Shown here: positions 12,069-32,020 of the stretch, one piece after another
Layout: each line of letters starts with the position of its first letter
How positions within the stretch are numbered: position 1 is the first letter of the stretch
IMG/VR virus record: IMGVR_UViG_3300043449_002710
Coordinates: 1 to 64,000 of that record
Length of the DNA: 64,000 nucleotides
Strand: one strand, 5' to 3'
The notes under the pieces: model-generated
What the model was told of the DNA's origin: nothing
Seen by the model: only the letters and a program-made list of their open reading frames with translations
Databases searched by the model: none
Translations under genes and position numbers: made by a program

Positions 12069-12154
12069 TGGAGCTACGGGCGAGATTCGAACTCGCGTGG
12101 GCTTTCGCCGCTGGTTTACAAAACCAGTCCAATCAACCACTATGGGACCGTAGC
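12069..12154 (-). tRNA. trnT: tRNA-Thr(UGU) with a long variable arm
   Basis: Acceptor GCTACGG/CCGTAGC-T-CCA, anticodon arm CTGGT-TT(TGT)AA-ACCAG, V-arm GGC-GAAA-GCC, T-arm GCGAG-TTCGAAT-CTCGC. Confidence 0.85.
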
Positions 12155-13548: not shown

Positions 13549-13622
13549 TGGGGAATCGTCCAATGGCAGGACACCAGATTTTGATTCTGGTTATCTAGGT
13601 TCGAATCCTAGTTCCCCAACCA
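13549..13622 (+). tRNA. trnQ: tRNA-Gln(UUG)
   Basis: Acceptor TGGGGAA/TTCCCCA, anticodon arm CCAGA-TT(TTG)AT-TCTGG, TTCGAAT T-loop and encoded CCA. Confidence 0.95.
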
Positions 13623-16322: not shown

Positions 16323-19300
16323 TCACAACAAATCTAGTCCAGATTGAGCACGCTTCTGGTTTAAGATCCCAGCCACGCTCTTTCGATAATCTTCCGTAAG
16401 TTGCAGATCCAAAAGGATTTTGGACAACAGTTCTTGGAAGTCTTGGAAAGTGACGCAGCCCATTGCTTTCCCTTCTTGCTGAAATACCTGAGCGCGTTTA
16501 GCGTCATCTAAACTGAAATCATCGAGGGGGGTTGGGAGAACGTGCTCGGGCAGATCCCAATCTTTCTTCTTGGCGGCCAAAATTTGATGAGCTTCAATCG
16601 GTGTGTGTTCTGGGTAGGTATCTCCGTTAAGCTGAGATAAAGCGCTGAGTTTTTGATCTTCAGGTATCAAGAATCTTTTGGAGTTCGCTACACTTCGAGT
16701 CAAACCACTCAGGGTTGGCGTATCCGAGCTGGAGTAATTGCTCTCGGTTTTCTCGGAGATTTCGAAGCGCTCTAGCCACGCTTTCTCGTTCTCTTGGCGA
16801 GAGGGGTTCGCGCTCGTCGATAGATTTGCTTTCGATGATTTTTCGGTCTTCCATCTTGTCCTCATTCTATCACAAGCGTCTTTTGACGCAACAGCTAATA
16901 AACTTTCGCTATTTTCTAAACAACCGTCTAAATCTTGGACAGCCGCTTGGGTTTTCGATTCCTTAAGGATTTGATCCACCAAGGAAGCTTTGGCTGGCAA
17001 GACCTCTACAACAATCCCGCCTAAGATTTTCTTAGTCCTGCCTTTAATTTTATAAGCCACTTTTTTAGCTAGATTCGAATCCCTGAAATACAGGTGGTGT
17101 TTCAAAACTTGCGCTTTGGGTTTTTTACCGAGCGGAATCAGGATTTGATTTCCACCATCCACGTCTTCTCCGGTAACGAGCACTCCATCAAAGCCTTTCT
17201 TTTTGGCTAGATCTGAAATATCCCAGCCGTCAATCTCACCTTCGAAAAGAGGATTTTTACCTTTGCTAGTAAACTCAGAATCCCAAAGACCTTGGGTATT
17301 TTCGTCGTTGATCTCAGCGAGCCGATTGAAAGTCAGGTTGTACTCCGTGACAATCATCCAATTTTCTGGGTTATCGTCTTCTTCGTAATCTGGATCTGCC
17401 CAATCCATTGTGGTGGGCAAGGCTTCTTCTGCTGGCCGCAGATAGGTTCCTTGGCCCAACACCCCATCTCCTGGGTAGTAGGGATCGGCCTGAGAAATGA
17501 GAATGTCTCGCACAAAGCGCCAAGCCTTCAAGGTCCTAGGCTCGGCTTTGCTTTCGACTTTTCTTTTTTCCCAAAAACGCTTTGCATCCATCGAGCGGTC
17601 TTCGCTAGGTTCCACAGACAGCCCACGATCCTCCTCGACCAGATCCATCATTTTGGACATGAGGCCTTGGCGTCGATAGCTATCGAGAACCCACATATTT
17701 TCAGACGTGAAATGACTCTCGTGCTCACTAAGCCTGAGCCCAGCCACGATATCTTGATCTCGGATGGCAAGCACTCGGAAGCATCGCTCACCCTCGTAAG
17801 AACCGTAGCCACCCACCAAGCGGAAGCCGTTCCAGTTCTCGTCAAAATGGATTTCTGTTATTTCTTCTTCGATGATTTTTTCAAGCCCAGAAAACACACA
17901 CGCAGCCACCACCTCGGGCAAGAGCACCTTCATGTAGTGGTTGAGTTCCTTGAGCTGGTTGCGACAATCGACCAAGGCGTCATGGATGTTTTCCTCGTCG
18001 TAGCCTGCAAGCTCTTTTCTGTCTTCCTTGGCCCCAGTCCGGTGGCGTGCCATGGCTTTCAAGGGGTTGAGATCGAACGTCTCATAGTGGAAGGTGCCCG
18101 GGATTGGCCCCCCATCTCCAATGTCAGCTCGATCCAAAAGGCCATTCTCGTACAAGAAGGCAAGATCTGTGTGAACGCAATCTCCGCAAGGGGTCACCTT
18201 GCCTTTGAGTTCCCCAAGCCAGTCACAGATCTTTTCTTTAGCTTCCCCAGGCTGAAGGTTGGATTCGTTGCAGCGCTCAAAGATATGCTCTAGGTGCTCT
18301 CGGTGGAAATCATTCTCAGGCTTCCCATCGTGTCTGAGGTACAAGACCAAAGGCTCGCCCACCTCTTCGTACTGGTTGTCCTTGAGCTTGAGTTTGAGCA
18401 TCGCGATCTGAAGAAGCTTGTCGCGGCTTGGGATGACGCCTGTCATCTCGCAATCTAGCATCAAGAGATCTTCGGGGAGAAAACCAGACGATGTTTCATC
18501 GAGAGTAGCTGTCGTAGTATATTTTCCAAAAGGACGATTTGGTTGAGCCCACAATTTCTTTGCGTCCTCAGTACGGTCGTCGGATGGGATGAGTTTTCTG
18601 CCAGAAGCTTTCTCGGCATGGAGATACATAGCGGTCGCTATTCCTTGCCGCTGAAAATCTTCTAGAACATAGGTCCCAGCGTCCAAACTAAATTCTATTG
18701 CGTCTTTATCAGAGATGGGTTGAATCGTTTCTTGATCTAAAACCCTAAAAGCAGAGTATCCAACCTCTTTATTTTTAAAATTAGCCCAAACGCAAAATAT
18801 ACCGTTTGTATCTGCTAAAGTATTAAAAAGGTTGTAGCGCCCGTGTTTGGTTTTGATTTTTAATACAGGCTCTTTTTTCTTAGAAATTGCTGCTTTGACT
18901 TTGAGATCGAGATCCTTGAGAAAATACCCTTCGCCGTTAAAAAGAGCGTTGGCCCAAGGAAGGGAAACCACAAACGCATCGATCGTTTTTCTTTTCTTTT
19001 CGTAAGCTGTGATGAGCCTATGCGATCCGTCGAGAACCGAATAGTAATCCCCTACCTTAGCCACGATAATAGGATTTTTTAGGTGTTCTTCTTCGACCCT
19101 TCTACCGTGATCAAAGACTTCGAAATTTTCAGCGACAAACTCCATGGGGAACGAAACGGTTTTTCCAGCCGATACCGCTTTATCCCACTTGTCTCTAAAG
19201 ATAGCCTCTTCTTCTGGGGGAACATTTCCATCGTCGTCCATATCCGCGATCATCAGAAGAACAGAAAAGGCATCTTCCAAATCGGGCTGATAGGGCTTTA

Positions 19301-21260
19301 CCGCTGTTAGAACTGGATCTTTTTTCGATTCGACGTGATCTTCTTCAGTCCAATCGAAAGTCCTGACGGGTTTCACACAGCTCTTATCGTAGACCTCAAA
19401 AGAGATATGCCCGTTGAAGTTCTCGTCTTCCACCGCGCCACAAAACCCCAAGTCTCGAATCACGGTATGAATCAAACTCAGAGCTTCGTCATGAGTGGCT
19501 TGAGGCAACCCCAATGGGCCCTGAGTCAGTTTAGCAACGACATCGGGGCCGAATTTTTCTTCCACAAGCTTCTGATGCTCAGGCTTTCTCATGTCGAGAA
19601 TCCTAGACAGATCGAGATGAAATTCATGGATACGCAGCGCAAACTCTTTGGCAAAATCGAGGCTATCGGTGAAATAAGCGCCCGCATCCCCATCCCCAGA
19701 GGGGATCTGACCTTCAGGCAGGAAGTCTGAACCGTGGTAGACTGTTATCGTAGAGTTTTCTAAGGAAGCTTCCGTAGAGACTCCGTCGATTTTTTTCCAA
19801 AGCTTACGGTAATAAAACTCCGATCCATCACCCAAAGCTTCTGGGCTTTGAATTTGCTTGAGTTCTTTGTATTGGGGATCTTTTTTGAAGACGTGTGGAA
19901 AATCTAAATCGGGATCAAATTGCCTTGCGGTGAAATCATAAAAAGTGTCTTTGATCTTAACAAGAGTATGCCCGATTTCTTCTCCTTGATTTAGTTCACC
20001 GATATCCGATCTAAGGGTAACCTTCGAAGACCAAAGTTTTATTGGTAACCCCATACTCTGAGCCATGTAAACGACAGCGTTGGAAAAGTCGGAGCATTGC
20101 CAGTAAGCTTTATCTGGAAAAGCAAATCCACTCTCAGCCGCAACTTCTTTTACAGTGTTGAGGAACTCATCTATGGGGTTAGATGCTGCAGACATTCTAC
20201 CCATGCCGTGTGACGGGGCGCTGCTTTTTATTGGGGTTAACTCTTCGTATTTTTCAATCGAGTGATCAAAAAATCTTTCAAACTCAAGAACTACGTGGTT
20301 GGGTAGGCTTGAAACCCAGTACCCATTAAAGATCATTCGATAAGTGGATGCCGTGCTGGTTTTCACTTCCACTTTAAATTCGGCGTACCGAACTAAACCT
20401 TCAATCGGATCTTGCTCGGGTTCGTAATTGAGGATTTGACCGTTGGGTACGATCGCTACTTTTGATTCTCCAGAAACTTTAAACGGTGTTGGAGAAACGA
20501 TCCAATTTAAAAACTCTTTTTTAGTTTGTTCAGGCAGGTCAGCGTTTTCGATGAGCGACTTGAGGTTTTGATTTTTCTCGCTCGTCTGAAGCAGAGAGAC
20601 TTCGCTCGATAACGCCTCTTGTAGCGTCAGCTTCTTTCTGCGAGATCTTGCCTTGCTGGAGTAAATCTTTAGTGGCTTTTCCGAATACTCGCTTGAATCG
20701 TTCCAGAATCTGCTTGTTGATAGTGGCGGCCATACTTTCCCCAATATATCATTTTTTTGACTTGACGCAACAAATAAACCACGTTCATTTAAATCTAGGG
20801 ATTCTCTGAACTTCTTTCCGTCTGGGGTTTGCATATCCCCAGGCAAGATTTTCTTGCCCGAGGCTTTCTCGATCTCCTGATACATGAGGGTGGCAAGACC
20901 TTTTCTGCGGTGCGCTTCACCCACCATCAAATCCCATGCCTTCAAATTCTTAGGGTCTTTGACAAGACTTGTGATCGCTTGCTCTTGGATCTCGCTGCAT
21001 CCATTGCCGGTGGCTTTCATCTCTTGAACGAACTGATCGGCAGCTTCGCGAGATTCAAAGACGTAGCGGCCACCGTCAGGCCCATCGTAAACGTCCACGG
21101 CAAACTCTAGATCCCCTTCTTTGGGTTCGAGCATATTGGGGATCGCCCGAGCAAAGCCCACGGACTCGCCTCCAAAGTAAACTTCGGCGTTCCAGTAGTC
21201 GGTGCCGTTTTGTTTGTCTTCCCAAACTTCGATAGTATATCCAGGCGGAAGCTGCTTCAT
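16323..21260 (-). CDS. polyvalent protein, 1645 aa (GNAT, papain-like, ART-like, ParB-like, GNAT, DEDDh exonuclease, GNAT, ART-like)
   Basis: Three R(R/Q)xGxA/M acetyl-CoA motifs (HRRKGLAT, FQRQGIAT, YRRQGLMS); QC..F...GHT...DFTARQF; VYHGS...AYFT; LDGSHRL; LDCEMTG...HDALVD; LGQGTYL...GFDGV. Confidence 0.85.
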   Translation of the reverse strand: MKQLPPGYTIEVWEDKQNGTDYWNAEVYFGGESVGFARAIPNMLEPKEGDLEFAVDVYDGPDGGRYVFESREAADQFVQEMKATGNGCSEIQEQAITSLVKDPKNLKAWDLMVGEAHRRKGLATLMYQEIEKASGKKILPGDMQTPDGKKFRESLDLNERGLFVASSQKNDILGKVWPPLSTSRFWNDSSEYSEKPLKIYSSKARSRRKKLTLQEALSSEVSLLQTSEKNQNLKSLIENADLPEQTKKEFLNWIVSPTPFKVSGESKVAIVPNGQILNYEPEQDPIEGLVRYAEFKVEVKTSTASTYRMIFNGYWVSSLPNHVVLEFERFFDHSIEKYEELTPIKSSAPSHGMGRMSAASNPIDEFLNTVKEVAAESGFAFPDKAYWQCSDFSNAVVYMAQSMGLPIKLWSSKVTLRSDIGELNQGEEIGHTLVKIKDTFYDFTARQFDPDLDFPHVFKKDPQYKELKQIQSPEALGDGSEFYYRKLWKKIDGVSTEASLENSTITVYHGSDFLPEGQIPSGDGDAGAYFTDSLDFAKEFALRIHEFHLDLSRILDMRKPEHQKLVEEKFGPDVVAKLTQGPLGLPQATHDEALSLIHTVIRDLGFCGAVEDENFNGHISFEVYDKSCVKPVRTFDWTEEDHVESKKDPVLTAVKPYQPDLEDAFSVLLMIADMDDDGNVPPEEEAIFRDKWDKAVSAGKTVSFPMEFVAENFEVFDHGRRVEEEHLKNPIIVAKVGDYYSVLDGSHRLITAYEKKRKTIDAFVVSLPWANALFNGEGYFLKDLDLKVKAAISKKKEPVLKIKTKHGRYNLFNTLADTNGIFCVWANFKNKEVGYSAFRVLDQETIQPISDKDAIEFSLDAGTYVLEDFQRQGIATAMYLHAEKASGRKLIPSDDRTEDAKKLWAQPNRPFGKYTTTATLDETSSGFLPEDLLMLDCEMTGVIPSRDKLLQIAMLKLKLKDNQYEEVGEPLVLYLRHDGKPENDFHREHLEHIFERCNESNLQPGEAKEKICDWLGELKGKVTPCGDCVHTDLAFLYENGLLDRADIGDGGPIPGTFHYETFDLNPLKAMARHRTGAKEDRKELAGYDEENIHDALVDCRNQLKELNHYMKVLLPEVVAACVFSGLEKIIEEEITEIHFDENWNGFRLVGGYGSYEGERCFRVLAIRDQDIVAGLRLSEHESHFTSENMWVLDSYRRQGLMSKMMDLVEEDRGLSVEPSEDRSMDAKRFWEKRKVESKAEPRTLKAWRFVRDILISQADPYYPGDGVLGQGTYLRPAEEALPTTMDWADPDYEEDDNPENWMIVTEYNLTFNRLAEINDENTQGLWDSEFTSKGKNPLFEGEIDGWDISDLAKKKGFDGVLVTGEDVDGGNQILIPLGKKPKAQVLKHHLYFRDSNLAKKVAYKIKGRTKKILGGIVVEVLPAKASLVDQILKESKTQAAVQDLDGCLENSESLLAVASKDACDRMRTRWKTEKSSKANLSTSANPSRQENEKAWLERFEISEKTESNYSSSDTPTLSGLTRSVANSKRFLIPEDQKLSALSQLNGDTYPEHTPIEAHQILAAKKKDWDLPEHVLPTPLDDFSLDDAKRAQVFQQEGKAMGCVTFQDFQELLSKILLDLQLTEDYRKSVAGILNQKRAQSGLDLL
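16660..16854 (-). CDS. nested (overprinted) 64-aa gene inside the polyvalent-protein gene
   Basis: Protein-like helical sequence; the host frame here is S/T/K-rich junk; own promoter 9 nt upstream. Confidence 0.7.
   Translation of the reverse strand: MEDRKIIESKSIDEREPLSPRERESVARALRNLRENREQLLQLGYANPEWFDSKCSELQKILDT
16864..16891 (-). promoter_or_regulatory. internal sigma70-type promoter for nested gene 16660..16854
   Basis: TTGCGT-N16-TAGAAT with extended -10 TG. Confidence 0.65.
20539..20733 (-). CDS. nested (overprinted) 64-aa gene inside the polyvalent-protein gene
   Basis: Helical, protein-like sequence; the host frame is S/K-rich; promoter 9 nt upstream. Confidence 0.65.
   Translation of the reverse strand: MAATINKQILERFKRVFGKATKDLLQQGKISQKEADATRGVIERSLSASDEREKSKPQVAHRKR
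20743..20770 (-). promoter_or_regulatory. internal sigma70-type promoter for nested gene 20539..20733
   Basis: TTGCGT-N16-TATATT with extended -10 TG; same TTGCGTCAA as the promoter at 16864-16891. Confidence 0.65.
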
Positions 21261-22678
21261 GTTTTAACCAGCCATTTCTTTTTCAGAAACTCAGCAAATT
21301 CTTTGACGTTCTTGAGCTTTTCTTTTCTTAAGATATCAACTAAATCGGCAATGCCTGCATCGGGATCTTTTTTGTAATTGTGGATATCGGCTAGCAAAGA
21401 AGAGACGAAATCTTGAAAGTACCAAGACAAGCTATAGAGCTTCTTCTGAGCTTCATTGGAAAGCTCTTCTTCTGAAGACTTGTTGTATAGTTCTAGGATT
21501 GGTTCGATGTATTTTCGCTTGGAGCTACTTTGGTATTCGTAAGGGTTTTTGACTTCCAAGTCCAAGGACTCCAATGGAACCGTTTTGGTTTTGTCCAAAA
21601 CCTCAAATGCTTTTTGGTCTTCGTAAAGGTAGATCGGAATGTTTTTCTCTTGAGCAATCGCGTAAGCGTTTTTGATCCAGTTTTTCCAATTATCGTAAGT
21701 CAGATTCTTGAAGTTCACTAGGATATGGATCTCTTTAATGTACTGATCCGCGTTCTTGATCTGAGGCTCGCGAGACCAGAGGCGGTCTTCCATTTCATTT
21801 TTTCTTGGGTCGGCTTTTTTAAATGCAGGTCCCCAGTAATCCACCGCTTCGCCGGGGTATTTCTGGTTTAATTTCTCCCCATCCAAGACGAGTTGAACAT
21901 CGCGGCTTTTGTTGTAGTGCCCGATCTTGGATCGAGACGTGGAGAAGAAGTAGAAATATCCCTCAGGTCTTTTGATGTCGTCCGATGCGGTGCCTAGCAT
22001 CGTTGAAAGTTGGAAGGCGTTTTGGGTCAAGATCTTCTCTAGGCTATGAAGGCTTGTACCATGGTAAAGGATTTTTGAGAGACCGGCTTCTACCGTTTGG
22101 GCATGGGCAGCAGCCCTGCCAGCCTTAGTATCCAAGACTCGATAAGCGATACCCGCTTTCTTGAGCACTTCAATCGCCTCAGGCATCCACTTGGCGTTGT
22201 AGTTAGGAACCGTGGGGTCGTTGAAAAGATCCACCCTGAGGACGTAGGGCTTGATATTGAGGCTATCCATCCCTTCGGGCAGGATCACTGCCTCCTCGGC
22301 CTCTTCTCTGCCTGTGTGGGAAGCTTCTGTCTCTAGGTCGGTGGTCGGCAAAACCTTGTTGTGATTGGAAAGCTTAGTGCCATCGATAACGATCCTAGCG
22401 TTCGCGTTGAAACCCACCTTGTCTTCGTTGGAATAGCCCGCATTGAATTCCAGGCGGGGGTTCCGTGTGAAGGAAAGAAACTTCCGCCCCTCGTAAGGGC
22501 CGTACTGCACTCTTCGTTCACTGAATAGAGCGCCGTTTTTGAAGATCCCGACAATTTGGCCGACTGGGGTGAAATGATAAAGAGTCCCCACTTGCTTGGC
22601 TGAAAGAACCAAGCTCGATTGAGCGGAATCTCCGAACAACTGCTCTACTGCCCATTTAACGCCAGGGTGAATTTTCAT
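21257..22678 (-). CDS. protein with two ADP-ribosyltransferase-like domains
   Basis: LYHFT...LSFTR...EAEE and LYHGT...FSTSR...EMEDRL; ATGA-coupled to the 1645-aa gene. Confidence 0.7.
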   Translation of the reverse strand: MKIHPGVKWAVEQLFGDSAQSSLVLSAKQVGTLYHFTPVGQIVGIFKNGALFSERRVQYGPYEGRKFLSFTRNPRLEFNAGYSNEDKVGFNANARIVIDGTKLSNHNKVLPTTDLETEASHTGREEAEEAVILPEGMDSLNIKPYVLRVDLFNDPTVPNYNAKWMPEAIEVLKKAGIAYRVLDTKAGRAAAHAQTVEAGLSKILYHGTSLHSLEKILTQNAFQLSTMLGTASDDIKRPEGYFYFFSTSRSKIGHYNKSRDVQLVLDGEKLNQKYPGEAVDYWGPAFKKADPRKNEMEDRLWSREPQIKNADQYIKEIHILVNFKNLTYDNWKNWIKNAYAIAQEKNIPIYLYEDQKAFEVLDKTKTVPLESLDLEVKNPYEYQSSSKRKYIEPILELYNKSSEEELSNEAQKKLYSLSWYFQDFVSSLLADIHNYKKDPDAGIADLVDILRKEKLKNVKEFAEFLKKKWLVKT

Positions 22679-22748
22679 GTGATTACCTACGTTAAAAATA
22701 ACACTAAACCAAATTGACTTACTGCGTTATATCTGCCAATCTACTAAG

Positions 22749-23507
22749 ATGATTCGTCAAACCACACCCGCCCAAATTACGGATAAAATCAAAAACTTCT
22801 GCCAGGGCGTGGCTCAGAAAGAACCTTTTTACGTCAAAGTAAAGCCCTCGGGAAAACACCAGGAATGCTTCTTCAACTGCTCTAGGTTCCTATCCACCCA
22901 CCCAGGGTACAAAATCGTTTTTGGTTGGATCATTTGGGAAGCTCCTTGGATATTAGAAATGGAGCAGCACTCTATTATTCAAACTCCAGATGGCGATTTT
23001 TTGGATGTAACGCCACAAGCAGACGGCGAGGAATCCATCTTGTTCCTACCCGATGACTCAGCAGCCCCCTCTTTCATACTCGTGGTGGATCGGCCCGATG
23101 ACATTGTCACTTGCCGTAAAGCCAACATCACATTCCCTAAGACACAGTCAAAAACCCAATGGGTCATTACTAACGTGGGGCTCTCTCAATTCAAAAATTC
23201 TCTTTCTGGGCTGAACGTTCAAGGGCCAAAATCACTCGAAGAAATTAATGCCACCTATGATTCTTTGTCGGGGCGGAAGCTGAACACCTTTTCAGATACG
23301 CTCGAAGACATCGTCTCGATGCTAGAAGGAGGCTCGGTGCTAGGAGGCCGCCACAGCATCAAAAAAACAAACCAGCCGCTTTCTTGTCTCAGCCATTTGT
23401 CGAACCCCAGCAAAGAAAAGCTGCCTAGAAATTCCCCTTGCCATTGTGGGAGCGGTGAAAAATATAAAAAATGCTGTCTCGAAAAAGATTTAAAGGGCTC
23501 AGTTTAA
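22749..23507 (+). CDS. SEC-C motif protein
   Basis: C-terminal RNSPCHCGSGEKYKKCC; N-terminal ECFFN...GWIIW...H...DVTP (transglutaminase/papain-like) domain. Confidence 0.85.
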   Translation: MIRQTTPAQITDKIKNFCQGVAQKEPFYVKVKPSGKHQECFFNCSRFLSTHPGYKIVFGWIIWEAPWILEMEQHSIIQTPDGDFLDVTPQADGEESILFLPDDSAAPSFILVVDRPDDIVTCRKANITFPKTQSKTQWVITNVGLSQFKNSLSGLNVQGPKSLEEINATYDSLSGRKLNTFSDTLEDIVSMLEGGSVLGGRHSIKKTNQPLSCLSHLSNPSKEKLPRNSPCHCGSGEKYKKCCLEKDLKGSV

Positions 23508-26500
23508 GAGCCCAAAATTTCTTTGATCTTCACCCACGCAAAATCCGTGTGCTCATTATTCAAAATGGGATTGAACTTCTCGGCCACCTCGAACAAGAAA
23601 GTCGTGTACTTGAACGAACCCTTTTGAAACACCGTCTTCTTTCCGGTGTCATGGTAGGCAGGGATCATTCCAATCTCCTCCTCAGTCTCCTTCAAAGCCG
23701 AAGCCTTGATATCCGTGGGGTTGCCCTTGGGATCGACGGGCACGGCACCCCCAGGGATGCCCCAGGTATACGGGTCCATGACCCAATGCGAGCGCTTTAA
23801 GAGCAAGATATCATCTTGACACCTGAACATGATGCCCGAGGCCTGAGAACCCCAGAAATCTCCCACGTGCCCTTCGTCTTCGTATTCAGAAGATGACAAG
23901 GTCTCAAATGGATCTGCAGTTGAAAACGCCTCTGCAGGTAAGGGCGTTTTGACTACGAGATATGCGGGAGTTTCTCGGTTCAATTCATCGTCAACGGTAG
24001 GACCAATCCCATCTTCTGGGTCCACGCCAAGTTGTGATTTTTTTACTTTCACTTTTAAGACTGTATTGCAACCACGCTCTTGTGCGAACCAAAGTGCGTT
24101 ATCGTACTCATTTGTAACGTAAAGATACTTACTTTGCCCCCCGTGAGCCCCTGTTGGGCTTTTTCCATTCCACCCACGTTCCAAAAGAGAAGCGGCATTC
24201 TGGTTACAAGTTCCATGGAAAAGTTCCAACACCAGATCCTCGGCAGGGGATGAATGAATGCGATCTCCATCCTTCCACTCGGATAAATAAATGACCTTGG
24301 CAGGGATTGAACCCGGTCGCAGAATAACTTCCGACTCCTCAAGTCTGAGATCAAATAAGCTTGCAAGATCTTCTGGGATAAGATTCAGATCCACTAACAC
24401 CTGTTCGGGAGAAACCGTGGCCTCAAGGATTAAGCCCTTCTGGCAGATCTCATCGCAAGCAAATTCGCTTTGCTTGAGCCAACCCAAATCGGTCGTCCAA
24501 GAACTCGGGCGCGAGTCTCGATAGGTCACGTCTTTCTTTTCAAAAGTGTCTAGACCCAAAGAGCGCAAAAGATGGCCTTCATGCCCACCTTCGGAAGCTC
24601 TGAGACCTCGGTAGATTGTCACGGGGGCTTTTGGTCGATACTGGCTTAAAAAAGCTTCCACTTCAGGGTATTTCGAATACTGATCCGCTTTTTCGTTACC
24701 CCAGTAATCCCAGGACCGAAAGAAGTTGATGATATGCCTAGAAATTCCGTTGATATCTTCTTTTTCACCGCTCGGAATATCATCCGAGTAGTCGGAGCTT
24801 TCCTCCTTAAAAGACGCCTGAACGGTGGGTGAAAGCCTTTTAATGAGCCATCCGTTTTCTAAGCTCGAATCCAGACCGTAGTATCTTTCACCTTTTTGAA
24901 GCTTAACAAGTCTCTCGGTTGTGATTTTAAAATCGAGTGGCAAAACCTTCACTCGCACAGTCTCATCGCCATTGACAATGACCTGTAATAGTCTGTGGTG
25001 CCCATCAGACACGACGAATTTGTTCTTGTAGGGATAGACCTCGATGGGGTCCTGAGTTTGCGCCAACATGCCCTTGTGTAAAGAGTCCACAGCAACTTCC
25101 ATGTTGTTTTTGTCAGGCCAGATTTTGTCTATGGCTACTTCTCTCGTTGTGGGGGATTTAGAAGACTGAACCCCAAAAGGCCGATTGGGCTGATCCCAAA
25201 GCAAACGCCCTTCTCGACTTTTCGACAGATTCGGGGCAAACTTCATCCCAGTCTCTTTTTCCACGAAAACATAAAGAGCGTTGGCGAGACCTTGTCTGCG
25301 AAACTCAGGCTCAATGTAGGTATCTGTCGAGACTAAAAACCCAGGCTTATTCCAGGCCGCCCCATAAAGGAGCTGACCTACGGGTTTATCGCCTAGAAGA
25401 ACAAAAGCGCGGCCCTCTCGGATCGAGTCATTATCCCCACGCATGGTGATTTGGTTTTCAAACTTGAACTCTTCATGAGTTTTTGGATTATCGAGAACAT
25501 TATCCTTATTTGTTGCTGTGGTTGCGTAAACCACTGACGAGAGCGTCGTATTCGGCTTGCCCGTGCTGCTGAATAATTCTTGCTTTGAACTCAGGCTGTT
25601 CGAGTCGGTGAAGGGCTTTTTCGAAATCCCGGGTGTCAGGCTCTGGGAGTTCCTTAAGCTTTTTGTCGATGATTTGGTCAGCCAGTTTTTCTTTTTCGTC
25701 CATACAGCGCCTTTATAAAAGCTCTCGATGACCAGCGATGACGAGGTCGTAATTTTCTTTGCCGTACATTTGGATATATTTTTCTGGATTAGCGAGCATG
25801 TCTCTATACTCGGCTCGCTCCTCTTCGAGGATATCTCGGTTGGCAAGCCCGTATTCATCGACAACATCTTTGTCGAGGAGTTCATCGAGGGCTTCGCTAT
25901 GAGGTTTGAGTTTTTTGTCCATACAGCGCCTTTATTATATTTATTTGGATTAAAAAAGTCAAGATTATCCAAGTCGTTGAAACTAGACAATATTATTTCG
26001 TTTTCGATCTCAGAGAAAGGAACTCCTTGGTCCATGTCCGAATCTTGATCTTCTGGTATCTTGCCTAAGATCTCGAATTGGCTGCCTGGGATTTTCCCTT
26101 CTTTTCTGACAAAGACGGTATAGCCCGCACCATCGTCTTCAATCTCGATGTCTTTTTCGGTCGGAAAGAATTCTAGGATCGTATCGCCATAGCCAGAATA
26201 GACCTTGTCTCGACCCACCCACATCAAAGTCCAGTCGGTTCCGAAATGACTTTTAATTACGTCCCTGAAAAATCGAGCACGATCTTGTTCACTCAAGTCG
26301 TCATCATGCAAAGTTTTCTGAAGCTCTTTGACTTCCTCGTCTGAAAAAAGCTCAAAAAACAAGTGATAGTAATTGAACCAATCGTGAAGGATCGAGTCGT
26401 CGCTGAAAGAGAATCGATTTTTGCCATCGTACCATTCAGCCCCTCGGGTGTGACTGAACCCATTTCTCAAAATTTCTTTTGCTGCTTTCTCAGTGGTGAC

Positions 26501-29500
26501 GTGAAAATACCTTGGCAGACTCGCTGCCAAAGTCTTGGTCGAACCCCAGTCTTTCTTGAGGACATCTCGGTCTTTGAACTGAAGGGGCAACACCTTCACG
26601 CGAAGATCCCCCGGGAGAAGCTTCTCCTCTTTCACTCTTTCCCAAATATCATCCGACACCGTGATATGGGGACGGTAGGTGGGATAGTCGTCCTTACGCA
26701 CAACTTCCAAGGCGTTGTGCATGTCCTCGATTCGAGAAGGCAAGCCCTTCAATTCAAGAACACGCACCTTCCCGTTTTGTTTGGAGTCAAACTCGACAGG
26801 CTCCCAAGTGAAGCTTGTGGGTGGGCTTAAGTCTTTACCTTTCAAGATCTCCTCGATCTTGTCTACTGTCACAGGCTCTTCGCCAAAGAACTTGACTGTG
26901 ATGTGCGCTTCATCCACGCCTTCCATCTCTACTGGGTAGTAGAGGAAAGAAGTGGTGTTGGCGTACTTGTCTCGGATCTCTTCTTTGGTTGCCTCTTCCA
27001 CTTTGGAAGCTTTTATCTTTTTGCTGACATCGACTAGCAAGACTTTTGGTGTCACCCCTAAGATGAAAGCCGCGTCCAAGCGAGTGTTTCCGCTCAAGAC
27101 CTGATAGCCCTCGGGGGTTTTTAAAACGATCGGGTAGGGAATAGGATCGTTGTTTTCAAACCCTTTCACAATCCGTTTCACGTCGCGAGGAAACGAGTAG
27201 CCAGAAACCAACTCTTCGAGTTCTTCAATCGAGTCCGTATGGCTTCTCATTCGAGTCTGGTGATCAAGATCTGGAGTCCAAGTAACGGCCTGGGATTTAT
27301 TGACGGACTTTTTAAAGTCCTCGATGTCTTCAAAGTATTCTGGAATCCATCCCTTTTTGACCTGCTTGATGACTTCCCATTCCCACTCTTGCTCGATCTG
27401 TTTTGTAGTGAGATTCACCCAGTTGGTGAATTCATAGGCCGCTGCCCCGAGCGATAAGCGGTAGACTTTAGAGTCTGGTTCATTTTCTTCTCTAGGGCCC
27501 CACTCAATGACATCTGGATTAAAGATGATGAGCTGGTCGGGCTCTCCACTATAGATAATTTCTTGATCATCTTCGATGCCATCGATCCCGAGATCTTTCC
27601 AAAACTGAGTGAATTTTTTTCTATCGTGGAAATAAGAGCGAAGGGTTGTAAACCAAAGGTAATCGCTAGGACCGTCCCCGAGCGCTTTTTGAATATCTTC
27701 TTCAGTTGGGTCATTGATGTTTCCGCCACTATTTTCAAGAAAGCTATTCCACTCGGAGATATCTTTTCTTTGCTTGGCGGCATTGAAAGCATCTAAACCT
27801 GTCTTGATTCCGGCTTTTTTCCAAATCTCCCACTTTTCAGTAGAGGTAAAACCACTGAGAAGTTTAATCTTGGTACCGGGCTTCAGCTTGGCATCCCAAC
27901 GGTATTTCTTGGCAGACCACTCGCTTACATCGATGTAAGTTCCCTTTTTGAAGAGATAGATTCCCTCGGGGTCAAAATAAATACGACCCGATTCCGAGTG
28001 AACACTTGGTATCTCTGGGTGATTGGAGACATGGAAATAGGGGTAATCCACGTCCTTGATTCCAGCGGTATTCTTCTGACTAGACGTAGCCAAATCGTCT
28101 TTTAAAACTTTTTTGAGCTTCAGGTTCTGAACGGTGGTCACATCAAAGACCACCTGATCTTCGTAGTCGGTGTTGTGGTAGGCTTTCACTGCATAAGGCA
28201 CCGTGAATTCAAAAAGATTGGGCCCGTATTTCAAAGACATTTCTTCAATATCTTTTTTGGTCTTGATATCTTTTTTCTCAAAAGCAAACGCTAGATCTCC
28301 GTGCCCAGCATACTCATGGTGAGTGAGTCCCAATCTTTCTGGTGCTTTTCCTTTGAACCCGGTTTTTAATACTTCATCTGGCTTTGCGGGGGTGAATCGA
28401 TAGAGGGTGGTTCTTCCTAAGATTTTAGGGTTTTCAAAGTAGACTAAAGACGAATCTTCATCTTCTTCCTTTTGTTGGATGTATTGCGTCTCAAAGTAGG
28501 CGAGTCTTTTTTGTCTTCTTTTTTCAGGGGAAAGCTTTTTCAGTTCTTCCAGATACTCTTCGTAATCCCAGTTAGCTTGGTGGAAATAAAGTTCGATATC
28601 TCCGTCGATCGTCTCGTCGTCTAAATTCTCGAATTCTTCTTTAGCCTCTTCCAGCCATTGCTTTTCGTTTTCTTGGCGGTCGGCCATGTAATAGAACGTT
28701 AAAAGCTCGGGGCTGTTTTTGAGTTTCTCTTCTGGTGATATTTTCTTGGCCGCCTCGATTTCCAAGTCGGCCCTGGCTTGCTTGGGCAATTCAATCTCAA
28801 GCTGAGTTTCCCCGGGCTTGAGAATCTGGATGGGTTCGATCTTGGCTCTAGGCTTTAATTCGAACTCGCGTTCGTTCTCAAAGTGGTCGTACCCTCTCCA
28901 GACAAGCTTTCTAAGAGTCTTTCCAAAATTGATGGATTGAAAGGGAACCCGAGCCTTGACGATCCAAAGAGGCAGATGCGAGTTTCTGCCTGAGTAGTTA
29001 TCGGCTTTGTGGTAGTCCCAGGTCCAATAAATGCCAAGCTTTTTAAAATCGATTGTGTCTGGGCTCTCTGCGCTGATCCCACGGTACAAGAGAACTGCAT
29101 CTCCGTCGAACTCGCCCGAGTATTCTAGCTCTTGCATCCAGCGCGGATAGTCTTCTTGGAAGGCTCGGTCCAAGACAAATTCTTTTTGGGCTTCCTTGTT
29201 TACTAAATTATCAGGCAGATCCTGCCAGTTCATCGTGTCGCTTAAGATCAAGTCTTGGACTTTTTTATCTCGCATCGCAGCCGCGAAATGCTCGTTTAAT
29301 TTGCCCAAGAAGGCCGCTTCGACGGGTATTAAGTTTGAAGTGATCTCCGCTTTAAAGTCTTCGTATGTGTCGTCATACCGGCACTTTAGAGCAACTAATT
29401 TCTCAAGAACAAATCTATTAACTTGTTGCCCGCGAGTGTCTCGGTAAATCCACTTCCCAAAAACGAACAAACGTAATGGGGTTTGGAATTTATTTAGCTT

Positions 29501-30859
29501 TATTCTAAAATATCCACGCTCGACAACACCTTCCAGCCGCGTTAAACCGGAAACTTGCTCAATATCTAATTTGGCTAGGTTCTTCGTAGATAGTGCCCCA
29601 GTTAATTCTTCGTGGCACTTGGCAATTTTTTTGCTGCTGTATTGTTCGCTACCCTTCAGATTCAGAGGTGGAAGCGGCGGTTGGAATAGACCCGTAAAGC
29701 TTTTTATAGCGAGCGAGGAGATCGTCGTAAACATCTTGTCCGAGGGCTTCGATGTAGGCTTGTGGGTTGGATACCATGCGGGCGTAACTTTCCCGGTCAT
29801 CGGTTTCCCATTGTCCGCTGAATTCTTTTTTGAATTCCTCGTCCAAGAGTCTATCGTATTTAGATTCATCTCTTGCCATACATCTCCTATGCTATCAAAG
29901 TTTATGCCGCTGTGCAACACGGGACTTGAGTCGTAACCAATTGGAACTAATTGTGTTTTATTTTCTACACGATTGGAGTCATCCGCCCAAACGGTATCCA
30001 TCGTTTTTTTGACAGTCTTCTCTAGCTCCTTCATGTCCATGGGCTTTTTATCCGCGCCCCGACCAAAGCGTTCGATCGATTCACCGACACTGTAATTAAA
30101 GCGGTGGCTGCCAGAGTAGTAGACGGATATCTCAGAGGGACGAGCCTGATTTAAATCGTGTGCTCTCGGGGATACCTTCCAGCTTGCATAATGGCCGGTG
30201 TAGGGCTTAGGACCATCGTAGACATGGACAATCCCTTCAAAGGTCTTCACACCCCATTCGGTTTTCCTTCGAGGCAAGACAAAATCGACTTTGCCATAGG
30301 GGGCGACCAATTCCTTGATCCGCTCCATGACCTTGATGGTATCCTCGTAACCCGTATCTTTGAGATCGATTCTTTTGACCACCTTGATTTTGGTCGGATC
30401 TAAAACCAAAAGCTGCTCTTCCCAAGCATGGATGACTTCGATGTCATCGAACACAGCGTCATAACCGAGATTACGCAGCGCCTTATTCCAGGCCCCTGCA
30501 CTTCGGTAGCCTTTCAAGATGAAATGATTCTTCATCAGCTCCCAAAACGAATCAATTGAGAGCGTGAATTCTTTCTCTGGGATTTCAATTTCAAGCTGCC
30601 TTAAGATTTCTTTAGCCTGATCCAAAGTCAATCGGCCCAAATCCAAGATTCGAAGCGATGGGTCAATCTCCACCTCAAACTTGTAGGGCATGACTTGCCA
30701 GAAGGGCGCAGGGTTGAAGTCACTAGGGAACAAATAGATCCCGGCAGGGTCTTGATGAAACCCCTTAGGATTGATTGTGACCTGGGGTACTTTGGAATAG
30801 TGGACCCAAATCTTATCGTTAGCGTGCTCTGAGAAGTCTGCAAAGGTGAGAGTAGCCAT
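23504..30859 (-). CDS. polyvalent protein, 2451 aa (multiple ART-like domains, two ParB-like, 2H phosphoesterase, GNAT, C-terminal NUDIX)
   Basis: PAGIYLF/PEGIYLF...G.D...DD units; LYRGI..IYWT..EREF; IYRGL..SSWT..ESEV; LFHGT; LSGNTRL and SDGHHRL; HITV twice; FRRQGLA; WGIPGG...ALKETEEEIG; AGGAG RBS. Confidence 0.88.
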   Translation of the reverse strand: MATLTFADFSEHANDKIWVHYSKVPQVTINPKGFHQDPAGIYLFPSDFNPAPFWQVMPYKFEVEIDPSLRILDLGRLTLDQAKEILRQLEIEIPEKEFTLSIDSFWELMKNHFILKGYRSAGAWNKALRNLGYDAVFDDIEVIHAWEEQLLVLDPTKIKVVKRIDLKDTGYEDTIKVMERIKELVAPYGKVDFVLPRRKTEWGVKTFEGIVHVYDGPKPYTGHYASWKVSPRAHDLNQARPSEISVYYSGSHRFNYSVGESIERFGRGADKKPMDMKELEKTVKKTMDTVWADDSNRVENKTQLVPIGYDSSPVLHSGINFDSIGDVWQEMNLNTIDSWTRNSKKNSADNGKPMTGKVTPAWYPTHKPTSKPSDKMFTTISSLAIKSFTGLFQPPLPPLNLKGSEQYSSKKIAKCHEELTGALSTKNLAKLDIEQVSGLTRLEGVVERGYFRIKLNKFQTPLRLFVFGKWIYRDTRGQQVNRFVLEKLVALKCRYDDTYEDFKAEITSNLIPVEAAFLGKLNEHFAAAMRDKKVQDLILSDTMNWQDLPDNLVNKEAQKEFVLDRAFQEDYPRWMQELEYSGEFDGDAVLLYRGISAESPDTIDFKKLGIYWTWDYHKADNYSGRNSHLPLWIVKARVPFQSINFGKTLRKLVWRGYDHFENEREFELKPRAKIEPIQILKPGETQLEIELPKQARADLEIEAAKKISPEEKLKNSPELLTFYYMADRQENEKQWLEEAKEEFENLDDETIDGDIELYFHQANWDYEEYLEELKKLSPEKRRQKRLAYFETQYIQQKEEDEDSSLVYFENPKILGRTTLYRFTPAKPDEVLKTGFKGKAPERLGLTHHEYAGHGDLAFAFEKKDIKTKKDIEEMSLKYGPNLFEFTVPYAVKAYHNTDYEDQVVFDVTTVQNLKLKKVLKDDLATSSQKNTAGIKDVDYPYFHVSNHPEIPSVHSESGRIYFDPEGIYLFKKGTYIDVSEWSAKKYRWDAKLKPGTKIKLLSGFTSTEKWEIWKKAGIKTGLDAFNAAKQRKDISEWNSFLENSGGNINDPTEEDIQKALGDGPSDYLWFTTLRSYFHDRKKFTQFWKDLGIDGIEDDQEIIYSGEPDQLIIFNPDVIEWGPREENEPDSKVYRLSLGAAAYEFTNWVNLTTKQIEQEWEWEVIKQVKKGWIPEYFEDIEDFKKSVNKSQAVTWTPDLDHQTRMRSHTDSIEELEELVSGYSFPRDVKRIVKGFENNDPIPYPIVLKTPEGYQVLSGNTRLDAAFILGVTPKVLLVDVSKKIKASKVEEATKEEIRDKYANTTSFLYYPVEMEGVDEAHITVKFFGEEPVTVDKIEEILKGKDLSPPTSFTWEPVEFDSKQNGKVRVLELKGLPSRIEDMHNALEVVRKDDYPTYRPHITVSDDIWERVKEEKLLPGDLRVKVLPLQFKDRDVLKKDWGSTKTLAASLPRYFHVTTEKAAKEILRNGFSHTRGAEWYDGKNRFSFSDDSILHDWFNYYHLFFELFSDEEVKELQKTLHDDDLSEQDRARFFRDVIKSHFGTDWTLMWVGRDKVYSGYGDTILEFFPTEKDIEIEDDGAGYTVFVRKEGKIPGSQFEILGKIPEDQDSDMDQGVPFSEIENEIILSSFNDLDNLDFFNPNKYNKGAVWTKNSNLIAKPSMNSSTKMLSMNTGLPTEISSKRSEPSIETCSLIQKNISKCTAKKITTSSSLVIESFYKGAVWTKKKNWLTKSSTKSLRNSQSLTPGISKKPFTDSNSLSSKQELFSSTGKPNTTLSSVVYATTATNKDNVLDNPKTHEEFKFENQITMRGDNDSIREGRAFVLLGDKPVGQLLYGAAWNKPGFLVSTDTYIEPEFRRQGLANALYVFVEKETGMKFAPNLSKSREGRLLWDQPNRPFGVQSSKSPTTREVAIDKIWPDKNNMEVAVDSLHKGMLAQTQDPIEVYPYKNKFVVSDGHHRLLQVIVNGDETVRVKVLPLDFKITTERLVKLQKGERYYGLDSSLENGWLIKRLSPTVQASFKEESSDYSDDIPSGEKEDINGISRHIINFFRSWDYWGNEKADQYSKYPEVEAFLSQYRPKAPVTIYRGLRASEGGHEGHLLRSLGLDTFEKKDVTYRDSRPSSWTTDLGWLKQSEFACDEICQKGLILEATVSPEQVLVDLNLIPEDLASLFDLRLEESEVILRPGSIPAKVIYLSEWKDGDRIHSSPAEDLVLELFHGTCNQNAASLLERGWNGKSPTGAHGGQSKYLYVTNEYDNALWFAQERGCNTVLKVKVKKSQLGVDPEDGIGPTVDDELNRETPAYLVVKTPLPAEAFSTADPFETLSSSEYEDEGHVGDFWGSQASGIMFRCQDDILLLKRSHWVMDPYTWGIPGGAVPVDPKGNPTDIKASALKETEEEIGMIPAYHDTGKKTVFQKGSFKYTTFLFEVAEKFNPILNNEHTDFAWVKIKEILGS
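25506..25703 (-). CDS. nested 65-aa gene (second of a nested pair), paralogue family G...YD.L
   Basis: Same shifted frame; leader TAAAGGCGCTGTATGGAC is identical to that of 25713..25922. Confidence 0.8.
   Translation of the reverse strand: MDEKEKLADQIIDKKLKELPEPDTRDFEKALHRLEQPEFKARIIQQHGQAEYDALVSGLRNHSNK
25713..25922 (-). CDS. nested 69-aa acidic gene, paralogue of 29649..29879
   Basis: YRDMLANPEKYIQMYGKENYD aligns with YARMVSNPQAYIEALGQDVYD; near-consensus promoter upstream. Confidence 0.85.
   Translation of the reverse strand: MDKKLKPHSEALDELLDKDVVDEYGLANRDILEEERAEYRDMLANPEKYIQMYGKENYDLVIAGHRELL
25934..25962 (-). promoter_or_regulatory. near-consensus sigma70 promoter embedded in the polyvalent CDS
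   Basis: TTGACT-N17-TATAAT, 11 nt upstream of the ATG at 25922. Confidence 0.85.
29649..29879 (-). CDS. nested 76-aa acidic gene
   Basis: AGGAG immediately upstream, own promoter, and paralogy to 25713..25922. Confidence 0.85.
   Translation of the reverse strand: MARDESKYDRLLDEEFKKEFSGQWETDDRESYARMVSNPQAYIEALGQDVYDDLLARYKKLYGSIPTAASTSESEG
29889..29917 (-). promoter_or_regulatory. internal sigma70-type promoter for nested gene 29649..29879
   Basis: TTGCAC-N17-TAGCAT with extended -10 TG. Confidence 0.7.
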
Positions 30860-31218: not shown

Positions 31219-31253
31219 TAGCGGAGATGGGAAACCGTCTCCGCTATTTTTTT
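31219..31253 (+). terminator. intrinsic terminator
   Basis: GCGGAGATGG-GAAA-CCGTCTCCGC followed by TATTTTTTT. Confidence 0.85.
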
Positions 31254-32020
31254 AATAGGGTCAGTATTAAAAGTTTTAACGCACACCAAAAACCAACTCT
31301 GCCTACCTGAATCAAATCCTCGCCGTGCGCGTAATCGAGCCAGTAGAGGCAAAAAAGGTTGACGTTTTGGTCAGGATAGCGGGGAAGTTTCCTTAGGTCC
31401 GTCTCAAACCCCATCTCTTTACTCTTAGAAGTCAGAACAAAACGTTTTTTATCAAATGTGTTTTTCCCAGAGAAATACTTTTCCACGTAGCGTTTGAAGA
31501 CTAGCTCCGCGATCTCCACATATTTTTTGGGGGGCTTAAGCTGATTGGCTTTGTCGCTCGGCCAAACCTGCGTGTAAAGATCCGTGAAGGTCCCAATGAT
31601 CGATGGCGTGGAGGAGATGTTGGTGTAATAATAAGAACCAAACTCTTTCCACTGGTAGTAACTCAGGTAGCTGTAAGGGATGCTTAAAAGATCCACCCCT
31701 TTGTTTTTGGTGATCAATACCAAACCAGCATGGATCACGACATCCGGTATGATTTGAAGAATGACGTTGTAAAAGAAACCGATGGCTTCATTTGTATTGT
31801 CATAGATCAAACAGATGTTTGCAGATTGAAAAAACTCGATCAGCTCAGTGCAAGAGATCTCGGGATCTAAAATACCGTAGGAGAGATTCCTTTTAGAAGA
31901 TTCGTTGATGTATTGTATTTCTTCTTTCAGCCAATTCAGTTCGGCTGATTTCATCCAGAGCCCCGGGCGGAATAAATAGTGTAGGGTGTAACCCTTGTAG
32001 CTTTTAGTTATCCGTTTCAC
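31244..32020 (-). CDS. conserved hypothetical protein, GNAT-like fold suspected
   Basis: RPGLW...VIHAGLVLI...LDY..GEDLIQVG pattern; overlaps the kinase stop. Confidence 0.6.
   Translation of the reverse strand: MKRITKSYKGYTLHYLFRPGLWMKSAELNWLKEEIQYINESSKRNLSYGILDPEISCTELIEFFQSANICLIYDNTNEAIGFFYNVILQIIPDVVIHAGLVLITKNKGVDLLSIPYSYLSYYQWKEFGSYYYTNISSTPSIIGTFTDLYTQVWPSDKANQLKPPKKYVEIAELVFKRYVEKYFSGKNTFDKKRFVLTSKSKEMGFETDLRKLPRYPDQNVNLFCLYWLDYAHGEDLIQVGRVGFWCALKLLILTLLKK

Follow-up and report, generated by a model that had tools for sequence, protein, structure and literature searches.

Do the many ADP-ribosyltransferase (ART)-like motifs in three long genes of an uncultured phage mark real enzyme modules, and what might such an assembly be for? 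The genes lie at positions 16,323–30,859 of a 64,000-nucleotide stretch (hereafter the window), which is the first 64 kb of the 223,260-bp IMG/VR virus record IMGVR_UViG_3300043449_002710 (CheckV completeness 81%), and encode the proteins P0003, P0002 and P0001 (Table 1). A first-pass annotation made from the letters alone had described them as phage polyvalent proteins with roughly ten ART-like domains beside several other enzyme types. We located eleven ART-like candidates, seven in P0003, two in P0002 and two in P0001, none of them a mere coincidence of motifs, although their support is graded: eight (A, B, C, D, F, G, H and I) are well or moderately supported as ART folds and three (E, J and K) weakly, so that the locus holds at least eight ART-fold modules and probably eleven. 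With at least 13 modules of six kinds in P0003 and at least nine modules in P0001, the locus is real, well populated and unusually diverse, and it fits the established concept of polyvalent proteins.

ART-like modules fall into at least five families

Candidates were marked from the translations (A–G in P0003, H and I in P0002, J and K in P0001) and tested by relatives, profiles and two AlphaFold2 (AF2) structure predictions. The local database was built from thirteen loci and two flanking contigs, and an exhaustive HMMER search with P0003 residues 1450–2320 added families for modules E, F and G and for the ParB-like domain.

The predicted structure of P0002 strongly supports module I as a Tpt1/DarT-like ART fold. 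The AF2 model is good for residues 200–375; with it Foldseek returned yeast Tpt1 (E 3.9e-4, probability 1.00) and DarT (E about 0.02), and a Foldseek-independent structure search (VIA) aligned 113 of 120 residues to Tpt1 (Z 11.4, root-mean-square deviation 2.3 Å) and also gave DarT of Mycobacterium tuberculosis (Z 8.5) and DarT1 of Escherichia coli (Z 8.4), nearly all 50 listed rows being ARTs. The residues invariant among relatives of I (Table 1) fall on or beside predicted strands 1, 2 and 5, and the alignment covers the NAD lobe alone (yeast Tpt1 residues 106–230). Module H matches I by local profile (E 2e-26) and by hhalign (99.9%). P0002 as a whole gave no Pfam or PHROG match and six relatives by word search; 20 predicted viral structures match its type at E up to 0.001, nearly all of them 'uncharacterized' or unnamed, including proteins of Dickeya phage JA11, Bacillus phages SP-15 and G, and Agrobacterium phage Atu_ph07.

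B and C are moderately supported as ART folds by the AF2 model of P0003 residues 540–935, which has a mean predicted local distance difference test score (pLDDT) of 80, rising to 85–95 over B. Foldseek against the PDB gave this model no row at E up to 0.001, though its list was dominated by ARTs. In the wide structure search (VIA), every row for model residues 38–156, corresponding to B, was an ART fold (TreX at Z 6.5, Arr at 6.2, RhsP2, PltA, LT, IcmQ, KptA and CARDS toxin), and the rows for C (residues 264–385) were Scabin (5.6), Tre23 (5.5), mouse Tpt1/KptA (4.9), the RCD1 PARP domain, Tne2 and one protein of unknown function. A second look at Foldseek's best 1000 chains gave ART folds in 50 of 50 listed rows, with TreTu (Z 6.9), LT-IIb (6.2) and cholera A1 (5.8) for B and Scabin (5.9), ScARP (5.5) and diphtheria toxin (5.0) for C. 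A Z under 8 can reflect a common arrangement; the assignment is persuasive despite the middling values because the match lists are exclusively ART. An Atlas shape search with the same model returned unnamed viral clusters only, at a TM score of ~0.5. The family-invariant residues of B lie on or beside model strands 1, 2 and 5, which is the R-S-ExE pattern. The family of C comprises five sequences, and this module may be atypical or inactive. Module F is a moderately supported ART candidate: its triad columns (Table 1) are invariant in the family alignment and it matches B at 96.4% by hhalign. Sequence-profile searches of the PDB with the F and E families gave chance-level rows only.

For A and D, sequence profiles strongly support membership of the ART-PolyVal family. 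A profile seeded solely from the relatives' segments positive for PF18760 (ART-PolyVal) recovers P0003 residues 27–160 and 961–1119, the two modules fall in the same family (hhalign 100%), and their His, Tyr and Glu are conserved in the family alignment, which would fit the H-Y-acidic pattern of ART-PolyVal. Together with a conserved extension (residues 176–291), A forms the N-terminal head of most P0003-like proteins. J and K probably belong to this type as well. A six-frame PF18760 search of the whole genome gave one weak match (13.9 bits, E 0.011), at P0001 residues 505–560 within J; no module in the window reaches the curated cut-off of 31.2 bits. The language-model look-alikes of J in the Atlas, at 0.93–0.94, are ART-PolyVal clusters, and those of K, at 0.88–0.89, are the same clusters; K matches the ART-PolyVal profile at 65% by hhalign.

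Module G is strongly supported by its family profile as a Tpt1/PARP-like ART of the H-Y-E type. It is the most widespread of all the modules, matched by ~100 of 150 listed representatives, many of them free-standing proteins of ~120 residues, and its invariants are a His (in Y-H-G-T), a Tyr (in Y-L-Y) and a D-P-E-D block. Thirteen of the 39 family members touch Pfam PARP, others touch Arr, ART-PolyVal or exotoxin A, and the G profile searched against the PDB reaches Tpt1/KptA at E 5e-4, followed by the Chelona, cholix and diphtheria toxins and PARP10. Module E probably belongs to the same type, matching the G family at 81% by hhalign.

By hhalign, the ART modules thus fall into at least five groups with nil or marginal mutual sequence similarity: ART-PolyVal modules with an H-Y-E triad (A and D, probably J and K), cholera-toxin-like R-S-ExE modules (B and F), the divergent module C, Tpt1/PARP-like mini-ARTs (G, probably E), and Tpt1/DarT-like modules (H and I). 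Local ART profiles found no further copies in the rest of the genome. The positions expected to bind and activate NAD+ appear to be occupied in 9 of the 11 modules, all but C and K, and conserved where relatives exist. Selection on the active site is indicated for A, B, D, E, F, G and I, whose triad residues are fixed or almost fixed among relatives of just 25–45% identity. The split beta-sheet core of an ART was recovered by structure comparison for I (Z 11.4) and for B and C (Z 5.6–6.9).

Modules that accompany the ARTs

The four GNATs, the DEDDh domain and the NUDIX domain named in the first-pass annotation all stand. Pfam Acetyltransf_1 scores 59 bits over three stretches in P0001 and also finds the copy in P0003; the four copies match one another by BLAST, with the P0003 copy 43% identical to GNAT 2 of P0001, and in an all-against-all BLAST of the three proteins the GNATs are the only link. 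Pfam RNase_T matches P0001 residues 934–1105 at 28 bits against a cut-off of 24, and this DEDDh domain is 67–70% identical in the relatives P0011 and P0013. The NUDIX domain likewise exceeds its Pfam cut-off.

A 2H phosphoesterase, absent from the earlier list of domains, lies between the first ParB-like domain and module E of P0003. It matches PHROG 755 (E 4.2e-6) and, below the cut-off in both cases, Pfam Acb1 (E 0.006; 16.7 bits against 27) and 2_5_RNA_ligase2 (E 0.043). Its diagnostic H-x-T-x motifs, at H1319 and H1398, form the superfamily's pair of H-x-T/S-x motifs ~80 residues apart. Because Acb1 scores below its cut-off, just membership of the 2H superfamily is supported.

The three ParB-like domains fared less evenly. 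PHROG 'ParB-like' families match them at E 1e-4 to 3e-4, a single local profile joins P0003 residues 1147–1278 and 1915–1973 with P0001 residues 723–766, and the family alignment has a D-G-H-H-R block with little or no variation; the family profile, however, reaches Spo0J at E 0.19 only, and Pfam ParB_N has no match in the whole genome. Calling the three stretches ParB/Srx-like is therefore reasonable but not proven. The first of them is 38% identical by tblastn to Rhodothermus phage RM378, and ParB-like and NUDIX pieces alone were matched when P0003 was searched by tblastn. A papain-like domain with a C-H-D triad, also claimed at first, was not borne out: Transglut_core matches the stretch at E 0.22 only, C389 and D442 are conserved in three sequences and the His in two of the three, and a PDB sequence-profile search gave chance-level rows only.

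The genes themselves had been called adjacent. They are indeed three long ORFs (open reading frames) on the minus strand, but a SEC-C gene on the plus strand separates P0003 from P0002, its 3' end overlapping the end of P0003 by 4 nt, and the locus therefore comprises two transcription units and not one unbroken block. P0002 and P0001 overlap by 4 nt and are probably co-translated.

Shuffled relatives, repeated linkers and recurring ends

Word-index searches found a handful of metagenomic relatives (P0010–P0016), 1400–3000 residues long, sharing segments of 25–73% identity in scrambled order; the same modules occur in other orders in these proteins and in P0017 and P0022. The closest of them, 2100–3000 residues long, carry Pfam ART-PolyVal, which among the relatives scores up to 44.7 bits and so passes the 31.2-bit cut-off, plus GNAT, NUDIX, RNase_T, SprT-like and 2H domains. 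A search for related loci in viral contigs with P0003 alone found none; with an alignment of the P0003 N-terminus it found one viral and 12 metagenomic loci. P0002-like modules (~290 residues) and G-like modules (~120 residues) also occur free-standing in many phages; for J, K and H, hardly any relatives or none could be detected. Some relatives sit on very large contigs, P0037 on one of 332 kb and others on L015 (232 kb), which suggests a clade of jumbo phages sharing this toolkit. On L015, giant polyvalent genes of 1726 and 3007 residues are clustered with a gene for an RNase_T+2H protein.

The modules of P0003 are interspersed with a linker of ~70 residues, rich in Ser, Thr and Lys (S/T/K-rich), which is also present three times in the relative P0012. 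P0001 has a different, shorter repeated linker (residues 160–195 and 1455–1490). Such repeated linkers could be flexible tethers or processing sites. A module of ~75 residues is confined to the very C-terminal end of five proteins whose domain content otherwise differs, namely P0001, P0011, P0031, an ORF of contig L003 and the RNase_T+2H protein of L015; Pfam offers weak hints only (YjhX_toxin, TacA1), and the module may be a targeting or assembly tag.

Comparison with known systems

A phage record, relatives with ART-PolyVal and the same shuffled domains, and a repertoire like the published one support the reading, proposed from the outset, that these are polyvalent proteins as Iyer et al. 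2017 (PMC5512222) use the term. In that survey ART is the commonest protein-modifying domain, typically beside GNAT, and ParB-like, 2H and other nucleotide-directed domains occur (PMC5512222). Common to both are giant polypeptides, many unrelated effector domains, ARTs in several copies, domains of NUDIX, 2H and ParB-like type, and shuffled relatives. Unlike the described polyvalent proteins, those of this locus have no detected MuF, MPTase/peptidase, lysozyme, ArdC, SNF2 or methylase hub domain.

Seven ARTs in one polypeptide and eleven in three genes are high numbers, as had been remarked, but a Pseudomonas prophage protein with 12 ART copies is the published extreme (PMC5512222) and Bacillus phage G encodes at least ten ARTs (PMC9503650), so the count is no record. 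The ARTs of the earlier survey form one clade (H-Y-D, Tox-ART-HYD2; PMC5512222), whereas at least five unrelated families, including R-S-ExE and Tpt1/DarT-like ones, meet here. The distinctive feature is the diversity of ART families and not their number, and most of these families have no matching Pfam model.

For B and F, both of the R-S-E type, T4 Alt offers a functional model. T4 Alt, ModA and ModB are R-S-E ARTs that modify host RNA polymerase and other proteins, and Alt is packaged and injected. Sequence similarity to them is not detectable, and the T4 enzymes are single-domain proteins. B and C have their best structural neighbours among the toxins of Rhs and type VI secretion systems (TreX, TreTu, Tre23, RhsP2), the cholera/LT-type toxins and Scabin, with which they share a minimal ART core of ~110 residues and, in B, the Arg, Ser/Thr and Glu-x-Glu positions; at Z 5–7 and 10–16% identity this is likeness of fold and not family membership, and unlike those toxins the modules have no immunity gene or delivery domain.

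The closest structures to I are those of Tpt1/KptA and DarT (Z 11.4 and 8.5), and Tpt1 is the best profile neighbour of G (E 5e-4); common to all is a compact NAD-binding lobe of the H-Y-E type. Unlike in Tpt1, the N-terminal RNA-binding lobe is missing here, and the Pfam PTS_2-RNA model has no match in the three genes. Unlike DarT systems, the genome has no DarT match and no DarG-like macro domain (no match to Pfam DarT (PF14487), PARP, Macro or NAPRTase), so the likeness is one of fold only. The accessory modules match Acb1 and phage 2H, oligoribonuclease/RNase T and phage NUDIX families at weak-to-adequate scores. Degradation of nucleotide immune signals is an established or proposed activity of these families.

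Proposed function and competing explanations

We consider it likely that the three genes encode polyvalent effectors that disable host defence and redirect host machinery early in infection, delivered with the virion by analogy. Each protein would be a beads-on-a-string array: small enzyme modules, each folding on its own, with S/T/K-rich linkers between them. Each ART module would have its own host macromolecule to ADP-ribosylate with NAD+. For the R-S-E and PolyVal types, as for T4 Alt, the targets would be proteins, for example of the transcription or translation machinery (possibly RNA polymerase), and the Tpt1/DarT-like types may act on the ends or bases of nucleic acids. Acetylation of host proteins would fall to the GNATs, and destruction of nucleotide immune signals or derivatives of ADP-ribose to the 2H, DEDDh and NUDIX modules, and the ParB-like modules might nick DNA or bind nucleotides; together they would act early, so that host defence is disabled and host machinery redirected. 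Roles for ART, GNAT, ParB, 2H and NUDIX domains have been proposed (PMC5512222, PMC7824862, PMC9503650). The proteins would be packaged in the capsid and injected with the DNA, for which the precedent is other polyvalent proteins and T4 Alt, and it is from precedent only that we infer delivery with the virion or its DNA. In a more specific version, which we regard as quite unlikely, the modules form a combinatorial ART library with several families still absent from Pfam, in which at least four modules (H, I, G and E) represent a nucleic-acid-modifying Tpt1/DarT branch, and the head, the tag and the linker form an undescribed scaffold for loading or releasing modules. If that were true, the phage would be using DarT/Tpt1-like enzymes offensively on host DNA or RNA ends, or to cap its own, mirroring the host's DarTG defence.

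Several observations weigh against the proposed function. The three whole proteins match no Pfam ART family at E up to 1, and among ten cut-out candidate segments searched against Pfam and PHROG a weak PF18760 match was the exception; members of the E, F and I families likewise touched no Pfam ART family, and the Pfam Tpt1, DarT, PARP and ParB_N models have no match in these genes. E, J and K depend on weak links, the structure matches of B and C are of middling Z (<8), and the H region is unfolded in the AF2 model (P0002 residues 17–152, pLDDT <50). C has Ala/Phe where Tyr/Ser is expected on strand 2, with R821 replaced by His in a paralogue, and K has no clear strand-1 His or Arg, so some modules may be inactive. 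Locus DNA was found in no RNA run among the public runs searched, a Pfam scan of the three proteins detected no MuF, portal, peptidase or lysozyme domain, and the neighbouring genes (SbcC-like, HD, histidine-kinase-like, ThiF, PcfJ-like and DNA polymerase) include nothing that ties the proteins to a virion. Hub domains such as MuF are what tie described polyvalent proteins to virions or to conjugation. How far do these points carry? That the motifs are chance matches in long, fast-evolving proteins without ART folds is what the missing Pfam families and the lack of a Foldseek row at E up to 0.001 for the B/C model would suggest; this is now largely refuted and extremely improbable, given independent profile and structure evidence for at least eight modules and structural-neighbour lists that are almost purely ARTs. 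A milder possibility, which we hold unlikely, is that many ART-like modules are catalytically dead relics of duplication, serving for binding, as decoys or as spacers, and that active ARTs are far fewer than eleven. The residues missing from K and C and the scarcity of relatives of J, K and H speak for it, but the (nearly) invariant triads of A, B, D, E, F, G and I do not.

Other alternatives accept the enzymes and change their use. The same arrays could be early or middle takeover enzymes made inside the cell, like T4 ModA and ModB and not Alt, and possibly cut at the linkers. We judge this somewhat unlikely: the genes do lie among replication and metabolism genes and not in a head module, no fusion to MuF, portal or protease was detected in the Pfam scan, and P0002-like and G-like modules are free-standing in many phages, yet a giant fusion of unrelated effectors is the hallmark of packaged or injected polyvalent proteins (PMC5512222), the conserved N-terminal head and C-terminal tag recur in relatives as an assembly or targeting signal would, and a conserved neighbour matches a connector PHROG. 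An RNA-repair pathway is very unlikely. In it the 2H domain would open 2',3'-cyclic phosphates, the Tpt1-like modules E, G, H and I would remove the 2'-phosphate with NAD+ and the NUDIX domain would clear the ADP-ribose products, restoring tRNAs cut by host anticodon nucleases. Jumbo phages have been described with such a pathway (PMC7824862, PMC9503650), E follows the 2H domain directly, as the NUDIX domain follows G, and for both G and I the nearest known enzymes are Tpt1/KptA. The match extends only to the NAD-binding lobe of Tpt1, however, and the RNA-binding N-terminal lobe is absent. That lobe carries most of the catalytic Arg-His-Arg-Arg tetrad of Tpt1. Nor was an RNA ligase or polynucleotide kinase seen among the scanned genes of the window, and the 2H domain scores at least as well against Acb1, which counters CBASS (cyclic-oligonucleotide-based anti-phage signalling). 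The Pfam PTS_2-RNA model (PF01885; KptA/Tpt1) instead has its sole genome match in another gene, at 198645–198815 (+) in a 527-residue ORF outside the window (E 6.8e-6, narrowly below the cut-off); this further ART-fold gene may be the actual KptA and is possibly the phage's true RNA 2'-phosphotransferase.

Polyvalent proteins are thought to be a first-strike toolkit of phages, and we know of almost none that has been tested experimentally. This locus brings together in one place compact, separable modules (~110–170 residues) from at least five ART families and predicted signal-degrading enzymes. Several of these ART families have many metagenomic and jumbo-phage relatives with no annotation and no matching Pfam model. 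Knowing what even a few of the modules act on would supply annotation for many phage 'hypothetical proteins' and could reveal new modes of defence or transcription shut-off.

Table 1. Features of the polyvalent-protein locus and its surroundings, in window coordinates; module names are predicted assignments
Feature	Position	Strand	Details
P0003, 2451 aa	23504-30859	-	7 ART-fold modules, 2 ParB-like, 2H, GNAT, NUDIX
ART A (P0003 aa 7-171), ART-PolyVal	30347-30841	-	H20, Y42, E147
S/T/K-rich linker repeat, third P0003 copy (aa 325-395)	29675-29887	-	
ART B (P0003 aa 577-695), R-S-E type	28775-29131	-	R593, W612-T613, E663-x-E665
ART C (P0003 aa 801-925), divergent ART fold	28085-28459	-	R821, T823, E900-x-Q902
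ART D (P0003 aa 932-1125), second ART-PolyVal copy	27485-28066	-	H943, Y968, E1106
ParB-like 1 of P0003 (aa 1147-1278)	27026-27421	-	local profile
2H phosphoesterase (P0003 aa 1287-1445), Acb1 / 2'-5' RNA-ligase-like	26525-27001	-	
ART-like E (P0003 aa 1450-1602)	26054-26512	-	H1453, Y1498, E1563 invariant; weak support
S/T/K-rich linker repeat, ~70 aa, two copies (P0003 aa 1644-1714, 1717-1789)	25493-25930	-	
GNAT of P0003 (aa ~1800-1900)	25160-25462	-	Pfam Acetyltransf_1 E 0.0024
ParB-like 2 of P0003 (aa 1905-2010)	24830-25147	-	PHROG 1033 and 17560; D-G-H-H-R block
ART F (P0003 aa 2039-2190), R-S-E type	24290-24745	-	R2084, S2120-W2121, E2175-x-E2177
ART G (P0003 aa 2206-2317), ~110-aa H-Y-E mini-ART	23909-24244	-	H2215, Y2247, D2280-P-E-D
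NUDIX hydrolase (P0003 aa 2341-2448)	23516-23839	-	Pfam 27.1 bits vs cut-off 21.1; PHROG 1198
SEC-C gene, 252 aa	22749-23507	+	C-terminal SEC-C zinc-binding motif, Pfam E 8e-8
P0002, 473 aa	21257-22678	-	two tandem Tpt1/DarT-like ART modules and helical tail
ART H (P0002 aa 32-153), paralogue of I	22220-22585	-	
ART I (P0002 aa 195-362)	21593-22096	-	H206-x-T208, S246, R249, E295-x-E297-D-R
P0001, 1645 aa	16323-21260	-	3 GNATs, papain-like (doubtful), 2 ART-like, ParB-like, DEDDh, C-terminal module
GNAT 1 of P0001 (aa ~7-160)	20781-21242	-	Pfam Acetyltransf_1, BLAST to P0003 GNAT, local profile
Possible papain/transglutaminase-like domain (P0001 aa 365-495)	19776-20168	-	unproven
ART-like J (P0001 aa 495-640), divergent ART-PolyVal (probable)	19341-19778	-	PF18760 E 0.067 on segment
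ParB-like of P0001 (aa 660-780)	18921-19283	-	PHROG 3264 and 17560; local ParB profile E 1.3e-8
GNAT 2 of P0001 (aa 785-920)	18501-18908	-	Pfam, BLAST
DEDDh 3'-5' exonuclease, RNase T/oligoribonuclease-like (P0001 aa 927-1115)	17916-18482	-	
GNAT 3 of P0001 (aa 1139-1236)	17553-17846	-	best Pfam stretch 1158-1232
ART-like K (P0001 aa 1250-1410)	17031-17513	-	no clear strand-1 His
C-terminal module, ~75 aa (P0001 aa 1568-1643)	16332-16559	-	
tRNA-Thr(TGT)	12069-12154	-	upstream of locus
tRNA-Gln(TTG)	13549-13622	+	upstream of locus
258-aa ORF	31244-32020	-	no match
Histidine-kinase-like gene	32004-33188		HATPase_c and HisKA
ThiF/E1-like gene	33240-33977		
417-aa gene	33974-35227	-	PHROG 'head-tail connector' E 6e-14
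243-aa gene	35266-35997	+	no library match; divergent partner of 33974-35227

Source phage and neighbourhood

The phage-type genes of the window include an SbcC-like nuclease, a 1364-residue DNA polymerase, a helicase and a connector-like protein, accompanied by two tRNAs. The polymerase shares only ~29% identity with its counterparts in jumbo Erwinia and Pseudomonas phages, and the host can therefore not be named. Megablast of the locus against GenBank phages gave no DNA-level match, and the sole public run holding locus DNA is a freshwater metagenome, probably the sample of origin; on these three grounds the source is an uncultured freshwater jumbo phage.

Most flanking genes serve replication or metabolism, with no obvious head module among them, and the sole structural hint nearby is the PHROG 'head-tail connector' match of the 417-residue gene. 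This gene and its divergent partner adjoin P0003-like genes in contigs L016, L003 and L004 as well, at 52–68% identity, and in L016 only one small gene separates the 416-residue gene from the polyvalent gene downstream of it; the pair may be a functional partner of the polyvalent genes. Relative to L016, the segment 31244–33977 between P0003 and these syntenic neighbours looks like an insertion.

A scan for promoters and terminators did no better on this DNA than on shuffled sequences. Between P0003 and the 258-residue ORF upstream of it, where that ORF has its 3' end, a perfect hairpin with a 12-bp stem followed by a T run (31219–31246) is possibly a terminator. The locus is also flanked by an HD_4 (RelA/SpoT-type HD) gene at 15256–15798 (+) and a PcfJ-like gene at 36172–37572 (+), domain types that recur in conflict systems and mobile elements.

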